Source: Octopus sinensis
Taxonomy: Eukaryota
NCBI RefSeq assembly: GCF_006345805.1
Contig: NC_042999.1
Coordinates: 87,358,001-87,422,000, forward strand
DNA length: 64,000 nt
Direction: 5' to 3'
Part shown: positions 10,486 to 46,954 of the stretch, one piece after another
How positions within the stretch are numbered: the first letter of the stretch is position 1
Layout: each line of letters begins with the position of its first letter
Translations under genes and position numbers: made by a program
Notes under the pieces: model-generated
Told to the model about the DNA's origin: nothing
Databases searched by the model: none
What the model saw: only the letters and a program-made list of their open reading frames with translations

Positions 10486-10628
10486 TTAGCTGTCGTTTTT
10501 GCAGTTTGCCATGCGCTTTTCATGATTCTTCACAAAGTTTTCAAATTGATGCCTCCAGTCAACAATATATTTCTGGCTATATTCAGCAAACTGCATTTTC
10601 CATTGTTTTTCAGCTTCACTTATGTCCA
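10486..10628 (-). CDS. ACHE: Acetylcholinesterase terminal T (WAT) exon: (L)DISEAEKQWKMQFAEYSQKYIVDWRHQFENFVKNHEKRMANCKNDS*
   Basis: Strong acceptor cattttctttcttccttcacag|TG, phase 1, matching the donor at 46773. Seven aromatic residues are spaced like the vertebrate T peptide ([31 protein letters not shown]...C), followed by a C-terminal Cys. Stop TAA at 10488-10486. Not in the ORF track. Confidence 0.93.
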
Positions 10629-11269
10629 CTGTGAAGGAAGAAAGAAAATGAGAAAATTTATTACAGAAATGTAATATTGTTTAAAAAAAAAACGGGAATA
10701 TTTCAGAGGTATATTTGAAGAATAAAGTTAAAGCGAGTGTTTAAAGTAAAAAAAAAATTTGCAGGTAAGAATTTATACGACTAATGGTAGTGAGAAAATT
10801 AACAAATTTTTCTGTAATGATAAAAAAGTATATGCTGACTGAATTTGTTCATAGTGTAATCGTGCAATGGAATATATACAAATATATATATATATATATA
10901 TATATATATATATATATATAATATATATATATATATATATATATATATATATATATATATATATATATATATATATATATATGCTTGGAAGATGGATTGT
11001 TATGGCCAGTCAGAGAGTGACCGTTGGTTTCGCACCTATAAGCGCTTAGGTACATATATTACTGCTCTAATGTTTTAGAGTATGCTTCTTTTTCGGATAT
11101 ACTGACAATGTACGCGCGCACACACACACACACACACACACACCACACGCACATATACACACACACACACGCACCACACACACACACATATAAATAAATA
11201 TATATATATTATATAAATATAAATATATGTATTATATATATTATATATATATATATATATATATAAACA

Positions 11270-12344
11270 CAGGGGTTGGACAAAATAATGGAAACACCTA
11301 TCATATATTTGAATTGTCTATAAAACCGTCAAAAACTTGTTTATTTTTATGTTTTCTGATTTATTATTAGTGTTGCTTAATATGTTTTTCTAAAATTGCT
11401 ATTTCTTTTCAGATATCATCAGAAAAAGGTAATTAAAATTCATTCAAATGACAGGTCTATCGGATTTTCAAAGAGGTCAAATTGTTGGTGCTCGTATGGC
11501 AGGCGCTATTGTAATGAAAACGGCCGAAATGTTTGGTGTATCACAAAATTCTGTCTCGAAAGTAATGACAGCCTTTGAGAAAGAACAGAAAACTTCCTCA
11601 TTGAAATAAAACTCTGGAAGAAAACCACTACTTTTAAAACAAACGTTTCAAAACGTTTAGAGTGGAGTAAAAACCTACAGTATTGGTCCCTAGAGCAGTG
11701 GAAGAATGTTATTTTTTCGGACGAGTCATCCTTTACTTTATTTCTGATCACCAGCCGAGTATACGTGTGGACACAGCCAAAAGAAGCATTTGACCCAGAC
11801 TGCCTTCTTCCAACTGTTAAACATGGAGGAGGATCTGTGATGATCTGGGCGGGGGGGGGGGTCTATATCTTAGAAGTCTCCTGGCCCAACGGTTTCCCTT
11901 CATAGCAGAATTTAATAGTCAAGACTATCTAAGCATTTTATCTTATCAAATTCATCCTATGGTTGCAGAACTGTTTCCGGAGGGAAACGCAATCTTTCAG
12001 AATGATAATGCACCAATTCACACAGCTAAAGTTTTTACTGAATGGCATGAGAAACATTCTAGTGAAGTTGAACATCTTATCTGGCCACCACAGTCCCCAG
12101 ATCTCAATATTACTGAACATTTATGGTGCATTTTAGAAAAACAAGTAAAGAGTCGATATCCTCCACCATCATCACTACAAGAACTGGAGACTGTTTTTAC
12201 TGAAGAATGGACAAAAATTCCTTTGGAAACAATTCAAACTTTTTACGAGCCCATACTTCATAGAATTCAAGCTGTAATTACTACCCCATATTAAAAAAAT
12301 TGTTTGAAATATTAAGGTGTTTCCGTTATTTTATTCAACCCCTG
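11270..12344 (+). mobile_element. Tc1/mariner DNA transposon, DD36E (Incomer-like), degenerate
   Basis: ~30-bp TIRs (CAGGGGTTGGACAAAATAATGGAAACACCT / AGGTGTTTCCGTTATTTTATTCAACCCCTG) within TA arrays. Transposase motifs FSDES, QNDNAPIH and WPPQSPDLNITEHLW, with 36 residues between the second D and E. Stops, frameshifts and a deletion are present. Confidence 0.9.
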
Positions 12345-45185: not shown

Positions 45186-46772
45186 CCTTTCTACTATAGA
45201 CACAACACCTGAAATTTTGGGGAGGGGACTAATCGATTACATCGACCCAGTATTTTACTGGTACTTGATTTATAGACCCCGAAAACATGAATGGCAAAGT
45301 CGACCTCGGCGGGATTTGAACTTAGAACATAAAGACAGACGAAAAGCCGGTGAGCATTTTGCCCAGGGTGCTAACCATTCTGCCAGTAATAAGCACATCA
45401 AGAATTTTGGAGCTCTATCAAACTTAAAGTGATCCAGAAAATAGCATTGTTGGGTTCAGCTCGTGTCCTAAGGAATTTTTTGTCTCCTTGAGACACAGGT
45501 TTGAAACCTTTGGTAATTTGTTATTACCGGCTTTCAAGTAAAGAAAAACCCTGAACTAAGATTTACCCGAGTGTTAGTGAATGATAATGATGATGATGAT
45601 AATAATAATAGCAATAATAATAAATTTTATGCATATATATATATATATATATATTATATATATATATATAAGAAGGTATCTCAGGAATTATGTTCCTGTG
45701 CATGGTATCTTTGGCAAATATGCTTTACTGTCCCCTTACAGTAAACCCATACCTTGAGTAAAATTGCATAGAAGCGGAAACTGTACAGAAGCCTATCGTA
45801 TGAGCATTCAATGTTCAAGCACTCTCACACTCTGTTACGATAATTCTGCTTGAGTATTACATTTAGAGGACAAGTGTGTGTGTGTGGGGGGATACTCAGC
45901 CATTCTGCATGGTGGTTAAACAGTTAAATTGTTGAGTTGACCGAACATTAGCACATTTATCCGCCGTTCTCAGACAAGAGATCCATCATCATGTTCACAC
46001 ACACACGTACACACAGACGCATGCACACACACACACACGCACACGCACACACGCACACACACACATACACACACACTTGCAGACACATATATAATATAGA
46101 ATAGTTATTTTATAGAAGCGACGAGAATATAAAAAGTTTAGTCTACTGACTTAATGCATTAATATCAAAGAGATAGGAAATATTCATTTCTCTGTGTCTA
46201 TACGTTAATGAAAAAACGTCTAATACAATGTAATATAAAGTCAAATCAAAGTATAGAGATATGCGTAATATTTTTTCCAGCAAGACGAAATATCTTTTCA
46301 TATACAGAATTAAGGAAAGTGTTATTGTATTTTCGCGAATGTATTTTAATAAAAAAGTATCATAACGATATATTAGACATGACATTTTTCATTGTTTAAC
46401 ACCATTATACATTTAATGAATCTTTTTGAATGGACATGGTAAAGTTTGTTATATGAAAAAAAAAAAAAAAAATGAAAAGAATCGCTGAATAGAAATATGT
46501 ATTTCTTAAAAATTAATGTTTACGTTATTTTGGTAACCAGAGAGTTTCATTTTCACATGGTGAATCCTGCGGCATCTTAAACAGAGAATTTGCACTCAGA
46601 GAGTTCTCTGAGTATGTAAATGAGAAATAATTATTTAAATGAAATTTCAGAAATGGATAACAAAACTGATGAGACAAATTCTAACTTGTCAGATGTAATC
46701 ATGTTAGTAAAATTGATATTAACGGAGCATGTTTATATCTATCGACACTAGAAGAAAGGAATTTCTACTCAC

Positions 46773-46954
46773 AAGTTGCTGCCACTAGTCGAGGTAGATA
46801 TTCTTTCCAGAAGGCACATTCCTTGGCTCTCAAGCCTTTACCAGTCAATAAGTTATGCACGTTATCAGCATTCAAATATAGGTACTCTTTTTGTGCAGCT
46901 GTGTGAACTGGCCATTCTTGTAAATTTTGTTCACCCCAATTTTTGTTAGGGTCC
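46773..46954 (-). CDS. ACHE: Acetylcholinesterase, last catalytic-domain exon: (G)DPNKNWGEQNLQEWPVHTAAQKEYLYLNADNVHNLLTGKGLRAKECAFWKEYLPRLVAAT
   Basis: Cholinesterase C-terminal signature GDPN...WP.H...EYL.L...G.GLRA..CAFW..YLP.LVAAT. Acceptor gtttctttattccag|G and donor ACTT|gtgagt; 182 bp = 1+180+1 (phase 2 in, phase 1 out). The AChE call, as opposed to another cholinesterase-family member, is supported by the T exon. Confidence 0.93.

Follow-up and report, generated by a model that had tools for sequence, protein, structure and literature searches.

A T-type terminal exon in the acetylcholinesterase gene of Octopus sinensis: predicted structure, distribution and probable function

Identity of the gene

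A 64,000-nt stretch of the Octopus sinensis genome (contig NC_042999.1, positions 87,358,001 to 87,422,000; hereafter the window, to whose numbering positions refer unless otherwise stated) raises the question of how the acetylcholinesterase (AChE) gene of this animal ends. A preliminary description, made from the sequence alone, had proposed that two pieces of the window are exons of one cholinesterase gene, that the second of them encodes the T, or WAT, type of C-terminal peptide, and that such a 3' end is a vertebrate-like architecture in an invertebrate. Are the two pieces joined as proposed, is the peptide a true T peptide, what would it do, and is the arrangement an oddity? It is, in our judgement, very probable that the window carries the annotated O. 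sinensis AChE gene, with a T exon spliced 36.1 kb downstream of the exon before it and encoding a T/WAT tail.

Positions 9486-64000 of the window match CM016861.1 (GCA_006345805.1; locus L005, positions 72954-18440) with 100% identity over 54,515 nt and 0 mismatches. The AChE gene lies on the minus strand of the window and spans positions 1001-71954 of L005. Three exons of 1,535, 182 and 143 nt, separated by GT-AG introns of 32,950 and 36,144 nt, reconstruct the 619-aa protein XP_036357024.1 exactly; coding exons 2 and 3 lie in the window, which covers the 3' two-thirds of the gene. The joined product of the 182-nt and 143-nt exons is identical to residues 513-619 of this protein, which is named "acetylcholinesterase [Octopus sinensis]" (P0198). 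The two pieces are thus exons of one cholinesterase gene, spliced in the way first proposed. A second octopus model, XP_014774793.1 ("acetylcholinesterase-like [Octopus bimaculoides]", P0001), has 98% identity across the whole joined product and the same junction, and a model from Argonauta hians (P0208) has the same C-terminus as the octopus protein. The O. bimaculoides model was found in the first protein search, and XP_036357024.1 in a later search seeded with a bivalve homolog (P0003). The junction between exon 2 and the T exon is therefore already present in public RefSeq models, and the assignment of the gene and its exons to O. sinensis AChE is near certain.

XP_036357024.1 contains a full Pfam COesterase domain (PF00135; 525.6 bits, residues 28-561), of which only the last 60 residues are encoded within the window, and it has the nucleophile elbow GESAG(A), with GESAG at residue 223. 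Its best relatives in the PDB are Anopheles AChE (E 1.8e-174) and then human butyrylcholinesterase (BChE; 4tpk), followed by the AChE entries 6euc and 5hq3 and by human AChE (2x8b). The substrate specificity implied by the name acetylcholinesterase is assigned only through annotation and homology. When the window was searched by tblastn with nine full-length or partial cholinesterases, only the two exons matched and no further cholinesterase exon was detected; the suggestion that the T exon might be part of another paralog is for this reason unsupported. Residues 1-41 of the O. bimaculoides model form an N-terminus that is unrelated to cholinesterases and for which the window has no coding sequence; it is likely to be an artefact that stems from a fragmented assembly.

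Exons, introns and splice sites

The penultimate coding exon (exon 2; 46954..46773, minus strand, 182 nt) has an AG acceptor and a GTGAGT donor, and was delimited by tblastn and by the exact reconstruction of the protein. It is flanked as ttattccAG/GGACCCTAAC ... GGCAGCAACTT/GTGAGT, and comprises the third base of the codon for Gly512, the codons of residues 513-572 (DPNKNW...LPRLVAAT) and the first base of codon 573. This exon corresponds to exon 4 of vertebrate ACHE and completes the catalytic alpha/beta-hydrolase domain. The terminal coding exon, or T exon (10628..10486, minus strand, 143 nt including the TAA stop codon), follows a strong polypyrimidine tract and AG, ttctttcttccttcacAG/TGGACATAAGT; it supplies the remaining two bases of codon 573 and encodes residues 573-619, the peptide LDISEAEKQWKMQFAEYSQKYIVDWRHQFENFVKNHEKRMANCKNDS. 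The joined reading frame runs DPNKNWGEQ...CAFWKEYLPRLVAAT/LDISEAEKQWKMQFAEYSQKYIVDWRHQFENFVKNHEKRMANCKNDS and then terminates. Both exons have clean AG and GT sites, and their phases are compatible.

The last intron (46772..10629, minus strand, 36,144 nt, GT...AG) is in phase 1. Of the first intron, which totals 32,950 nt, the 3' 17 kb lie in the window (46955..64000, minus strand); the first coding exon (1,535 nt, residues 1-512) is found about 15.9 kb past the high-coordinate end of the window. A pattern scan of the start of the 3' untranslated region (10284..10435, minus strand) showed the first candidate poly(A) hexamers, ATTAAA, starting 55 and 201 nt past the stop codon. Unspliced read-through past the donor of exon 2 (46765-46772, minus strand) would add two codons before a stop, giving ...VAAT-C-E, and the product of such read-through would be a tail-less enzyme with a Cys close to its end. 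As a plain open reading frame (ORF), the T exon has only 47 codons and is therefore easily missed. It had been described as invisible to the ORF track, and at 47 aa it does fall below the usual 60-aa cut-off for listing.

The terminal exon encodes a T-type peptide

The joined product aligns with human AChE-T (2x8b_A, residues 494-577; E 2.5e-17) without a break over the junction, and its alignment with human BChE (E 3e-14) is likewise uninterrupted at this point. The tail alone matches the crystallized WAT peptide 1vzj with an E value of 1.6e-4. A custom T-peptide hidden Markov model (HMM) was built from aligned tails, invertebrate ones included and octopus sequences excluded. Among 2,668 six-frame pieces of the window, the frame at 10680..10489 scored 68.1 bits (E 5.5e-20) with this model, and the next best piece 6.2 bits. 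The Pfam model AChE_tetra (PF08674) gave 23.3 bits (E 5e-5) for the T exon alone, against a gathering threshold of 25.

An exhaustive protein search seeded with the O. bimaculoides model yielded an alignment of 37 T peptides, that of octopus and 36 others. The seven aromatic positions of the octopus tail, W10, F14, Y17, Y21, W25, F29 and F32, align with those of all other T peptides, and the conserved aromatics and near-terminal Cys are shared with the molluscs, the annelid, the rotifer, the nematodes, the echinoderms and the vertebrates of this alignment. On an ideal helix the seven aromatics of octopus fall within a 120-degree arc, an arrangement equalled by 92 of 20,000 shuffled sequences. 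The Eisenberg hydrophobic moment of the tail did not differ significantly from that of shuffles (p ~0.14); Trp and Tyr are low on the Eisenberg scale, and the aromatic-arc test was used instead for this reason. A single Cys is located at position -5 (C-K-N-D-S), 11 residues past the last aromatic. Thus, the retention of the aromatic pattern and of the C-terminal Cys, as noted in the preliminary description, is borne out as far as the seven positions and the Cys are concerned, but only two of the three canonical tryptophans are present. From these comparisons, the terminal exon encodes a true T/WAT-type peptide, in agreement with its original identification, and the Pfam score below the threshold reflects a model weighted toward vertebrates rather than missing homology.

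Distribution and conservation of the tail

The same tail was found in named proteins of gastropods (Haliotis, Aplysia, Lymnaea, Biomphalaria, Littorina, Patella and others), in bivalves (Argopecten, Saccostrea, Sinanodonta and the Mercenaria-like P0003), in the brachiopod Lingula, the annelid Paralvinella and a rotifer, and, among cephalopods, in Argonauta. It is also found in the nematodes Soboliphyme and Wuchereria (ACE-1 type), in the nematomorph Gordionus, and in the echinoderms Antedon, Anneissia, Patiria, Asterias, Apostichopus and Amphiura. Many invertebrate T-type proteins already carry PF08674 in precomputed annotation. Octopus and the other invertebrate T-type cholinesterases have in common the consensus (A/G)DI.E.E.EWK.QF.EW.T.YIVDWK.QFD.F......C, and a Cys near the C-terminus is found in most of the invertebrate peptides. 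The T exon of octopus is therefore an ordinary and phylogenetically widespread one.

Between Octopus and Argonauta, 41 of 47 residues are identical in the tail, 56 of 60 in exon 2 and 421 of 512 in the first exon; between O. sinensis and O. bimaculoides, 45 of the 47 tail residues are identical. The comparison of 41/47 in the tail with 421/512 in the first exon indicates constraint on the tail that is at least as strong as that on the catalytic domain of the enzyme. In related mollusc proteins the catalytic domain and the T tail meet at the same residue as in octopus. In addition, an intron-free contig of 2,334 nt from a bivalve-like sample (L001) has the catalytic domain and a T peptide in one ORF; this transcript-like contig points to use of the same type of junction at the transcript level in another mollusc.

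The gene, its three-exon structure and the exact junction are already public, and T-type invertebrate tails are widespread in the databases, so that in these respects the locus matters little. It may be useful to specialists that the octopod T peptides are unlabelled because they score just under the Pfam AChE_tetra threshold, and the gene provides one more test case for the proline-rich partner of invertebrate T subunits.

Exon boundaries compared with those of vertebrates and other animals

The catalytic exon had been described as having the boundaries and phases of vertebrate ACHE exon 4. The boundaries and phases of both exons were checked against a mammalian ACHE genomic fragment in a metagenome assembly (L003; ENA ERZ27291714, contig k141_1292468), presumably host DNA, which contains exon 4, a read-through peptide and the T exon. 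Its exon 4 has the form cag/G GAC CCC AAT ... GCC ACC G/gtacgc (170 nt), and its T exon, 0.83 kb downstream of exon 4, begins cag/AC ACG CTG GAC GAG. The corresponding octopus sequences are cag/G GAC CCT AAC ... GCA ACT T/gtgagt (182 nt) and then acag/TG GAC ATA AGT GAA. The positions and phases of the boundaries of octopus exon 2 and T exon are identical to those of the mammalian fragment.

Similar boundaries appear to be common. Among 111 short ORFs on genomic contigs, mostly anonymous, 92 have the motif (D/N/S/E)P(N/S/T/D) at most 75 residues before C.FW, and in most of these motif-bearing ORFs the catalytic similarity starts at the motif, after R or S, as an in-frame AG acceptor would encode. 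Many cholinesterase genomic ORFs read through the donor as ...AT-C-K or ...AT-C-E, as expected from a GT(A/G)AG donor sequence. An invertebrate T exon on another contig (L002) has the same acceptor phase as that of octopus. The C-terminal splice site is conserved in insects, nematodes and vertebrates (PMC3045457, citing Combes et al.). Since the exon-4 boundaries and the phase-1 T junction are common to mammals, octopus and many contigs, the modular 3' architecture is probably ancestral to bilaterians rather than vertebrate-like. The view of this 3' end as an invertebrate oddity cannot be maintained, as animals across Bilateria have the T peptide and both splice positions.

Compared with vertebrate AChE-T and BChE (PF08674; 1VZJ, 6I2T), the octopus tail is the same in being encoded by a separate 3' exon, joined in phase 1 right after ...(S/A)AT. 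It is also similar in its length of about 40 residues, in its seven aromatics on one helical face and near-terminal Cys, and in the motif EAE+QWK..F and the block W+.QF. There are some distinct differences. Octopus has one additional residue between aromatics 3 and 4 (EYSQKYIVDW, compared with RWS-SYMVHW in human); in the aligned peptides the extra residue is the rule outside vertebrates, and it is vertebrates that have a one-residue deletion. The last intron is 36.1 kb in octopus as opposed to about 0.8 kb in the mammalian fragment, and the whole upstream coding region is fused into one exon in octopus, unlike in vertebrates.

Points against a functional T tail

Several observations weigh against the reading of this gene as one that ends in a functional T/WAT tail. 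The first is that O. sinensis, O. bimaculoides and Argonauta have Tyr (Tyr17) in place of the central canonical Trp. Two of the three canonical tryptophans are kept (W10 and W25), and the even spacing of the human tryptophans (W10, W17 and W24) is not seen; in the octopus tail the spacing is 7 and then 8, a consequence of the extra residue that all non-vertebrate T peptides share. The third aromatic is Trp in almost all other taxa, in contrast to the Tyr of Octopus and Argonauta; Tyr is also found in one anonymous match (P0043). The location of the Cys differs as well: in octopus it is at -5, 11 residues after the last aromatic, whereas in human it is at -4, 6 residues after. In full-length proteins the AChE_tetra score is 18.4 bits for O. 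sinensis and 20.2 bits for Argonauta, under the 25-bit cut-off, and the octopod tails are not tagged as AChE_tetra in precomputed Pfam annotation, whereas many gastropod, bivalve and brachiopod orthologs are. The Tyr substitution and the longer Cys spacer probably explain both the low scores and the missing label. A single-sequence AlphaFold2 model of XP_014774793.1 was of low confidence (mean predicted local distance difference test score 50.7). The octopus junction comes from RefSeq computational models; the mRNA is presumably made as modelled. Finally, we know of no partner with a proline-rich attachment domain (PRAD), ColQ or PRiMA, identified in any protostome.

Predicted function of the tail

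In vertebrates, the core around which four C-terminal WAT helices wrap is a proline-rich peptide from a separate gene product; the known partners are ColQ, PRiMA and, for BChE, assorted proline-rich peptides, and disulfides link the near-terminal Cys to other subunits or to the anchor (PMC8518539, PMC1285061, PMC5943944). A similar course of events can be proposed for octopus. Phase-1 splicing of the 143-nt exon would add a 47-residue T peptide to the catalytic domain, and this tail, by homology with AChE-T and BChE, would fold into an amphiphilic alpha-helix whose seven aromatic side chains lie on the same face. Four of these helices might then wrap a polyproline II stretch of a partner to give a tetramer, again by homology, with the near-terminal Cys available for disulfides between subunits or to the partner. 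With the exception of the central Trp, the octopus tail keeps the features needed for PRAD assembly. By analogy with the vertebrate enzymes, we regard PRAD-type tetramerization as the most likely function of the tail, with moderate confidence; helix formation, tetramerization and the existence of a proline-rich partner are all inferred on the same basis, and a proline-rich anchor in octopus is a reasonable expectation.

The alternative that survives best is one in which a T peptide is produced that functions independently of any proline-rich partner. The subunits might form amphiphilic monomers or dimers, or homotetramers free of any partner, or the peptide might act mainly as a signal by which unassembled subunits undergo quality control or degradation in the endoplasmic reticulum, or as a helix that interacts with membrane or matrix. 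When vertebrate T subunits are expressed on their own, they also yield amphiphilic monomers and dimers, and tetramers to some extent. The replacement of the middle Trp by Tyr, the Cys spacing unlike that of vertebrates, the Pfam score under the threshold and the lack of a known ColQ or PRiMA ortholog in protostomes would all be in keeping with such a role. A further source, PMC2289553, bears on the forms made by lone vertebrate T subunits. Against this alternative, all seven aromatics are kept on one helical face, and the pattern is conserved from echinoderms to molluscs and nematodes, which is hard to explain without a conserved binding partner. In addition, BChE tetramers use proline-rich peptides from many unrelated proteins (PMC8518539), so that a dedicated anchor gene is not required. 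On balance we consider a role independent of a partner rather unlikely.

To return to assembly on a proline-rich partner, the presence of the same tail in molluscs, annelids, brachiopods, rotifers, nematodes and echinoderms suggests that PRAD-type anchoring might go back to the bilaterian ancestor. That the diverged octopod WAT tail still tetramerizes on a proline-rich partner, and that PRAD anchoring predates ColQ and PRiMA and was present in that ancestor, is a combination that we put forward tentatively. If it is true, the large cholinergic brain of the octopus would make this animal well suited to a search for the anchor.

H-type exons and other alternatives

The second alternative concerns isoforms: the gene might also yield an H-type product, a glycosylphosphatidylinositol (GPI)-anchored dimer, or some other isoform, through an alternative 3' exon, with the T form being minor. 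H-type cholinesterases (those of the squid Loligo opalescens and of Torpedo, and mammalian AChE-H) have the same splice position after the catalytic domain, and we found H-type tails at this position in Oratosquilla (P0148) and Lamellibrachia (P0025). In contrast to H-type tails, which occur in GPI-anchored dimers, the octopus tail is hydrophilic and amphiphilic and is without a hydrophobic GPI signal. The squid Loligo AChE described by Talesa et al. in 1999 is said to be a GPI-anchored G2a dimer. The preliminary description had taken squid AChE as its comparison and deduced isoform diversity from it; the animal here is Octopus sinensis and not a squid, and nothing in the window shows such diversity. 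PMC3264636 cites Talesa et al. 1999 for the AChE cDNA of Loligo opalescens (AAD15886).

All phase-1 acceptors of the 36-kb intron were scanned for a following Cys and hydrophobic tail. Only microsatellite translations and no convincing H-type exon were found, with 3 matches in phase 1, no excess over the control phases, which gave 1 and 2; since H peptides show little conservation (PMC3045457), homology searches would miss an H exon, and its absence from the intron is not proven. Several mollusc RefSeq entries are labelled isoform X1, X2 and so on, which agrees with the existence of alternative products, but one product is listed for the octopus gene (in a collection that keeps only the longest), and read-through of the donor ends after two codons (...AATCE). 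It should be noted that in nematodes T and H tails are split between genes, ace-1 on the one hand and ace-2/3 on the other, and that C. elegans ACE-1 has a T-type tail. The H and T forms of cephalopods could equally come from two paralogous genes, and the GPI-anchored dimer of squid could derive from a paralog rather than from the gene described here. An additional H-type product of this gene is thus improbable.

It is very improbable that the T exon is a relic in decay or part of another gene or paralog, wrongly joined in the public model: the great length of the last intron (36 kb), the derivation of the octopus junction from computational models, and the unrelated 41-residue N-terminus of the O. 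bimaculoides model, which shows that such models can be partly wrong, would allow it, but there is no other cholinesterase exon between the two exons or elsewhere in the window, the T exon has an intact reading frame, acceptor and phase, conservation of the tail equals that of the catalytic domain (45/47 in O. bimaculoides, 41/47 in Argonauta), and both mollusc relatives and the transcript-like contig join the catalytic domain and T tail at the same residue.

Repeats and other reading frames

The remainder of the window contains remnants of mobile elements and abundant simple repeats. A 111-aa ORF at 11959-12294 on the plus strand is a transposase remnant (Pfam DDE_3, 45.7 bits, E 8e-12). Lying in the 36-kb intron some 1.3 kb upstream of the T exon, it corresponds to the C-terminal domain of a Tc1/mariner-type transposase and runs antisense to the gene. 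Another transposase-like ORF, in a more advanced state of decay, was found at 48488-49014, also on the plus strand, with a DDE_3 score of 18 bits, below the threshold. It is situated some 1.6 kb upstream of exon 2, within the first intron, and includes the sequence ...NSPECNPLDHYMWDVVERE..., typical of mariner-like elements. The longest ORF of the window, with 349 aa, is located at 1798-2847 on the minus strand, about 7.6 kb downstream of the stop codon of the gene; it had no Pfam match at E <= 0.01, and may belong to a retroelement or have arisen by chance.

Interspersed repeats with 89-99% identity occur in both orientations at 53521-53757, 60879-61114, 34395-34571, 34988-35164 and 21186-21304. 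Copies of these short repeats, which are about 235 or 178 nt long, are present in both introns and in other parts of the locus, and look like SINE-like (short interspersed nuclear element) or other dispersed elements.

The last intron is rich in microsatellites. In the window as a whole, dense microsatellites or low-complexity sequence are found at about 2800-3470, 6416-6778, 12000-14000, 30600-31950, 36000-38000, 49050-49800, 52480-52870, 54100-57330 and 61800-62850. The repeated units are (CATA/TATG)n, (CA)n, (TA)n, (CT)n and trinucleotide runs; these microsatellites give rise to long spurious ORFs (poly-Ser, poly-Asp and 'YVCM' repeats) and to strong local swings in GC skew.

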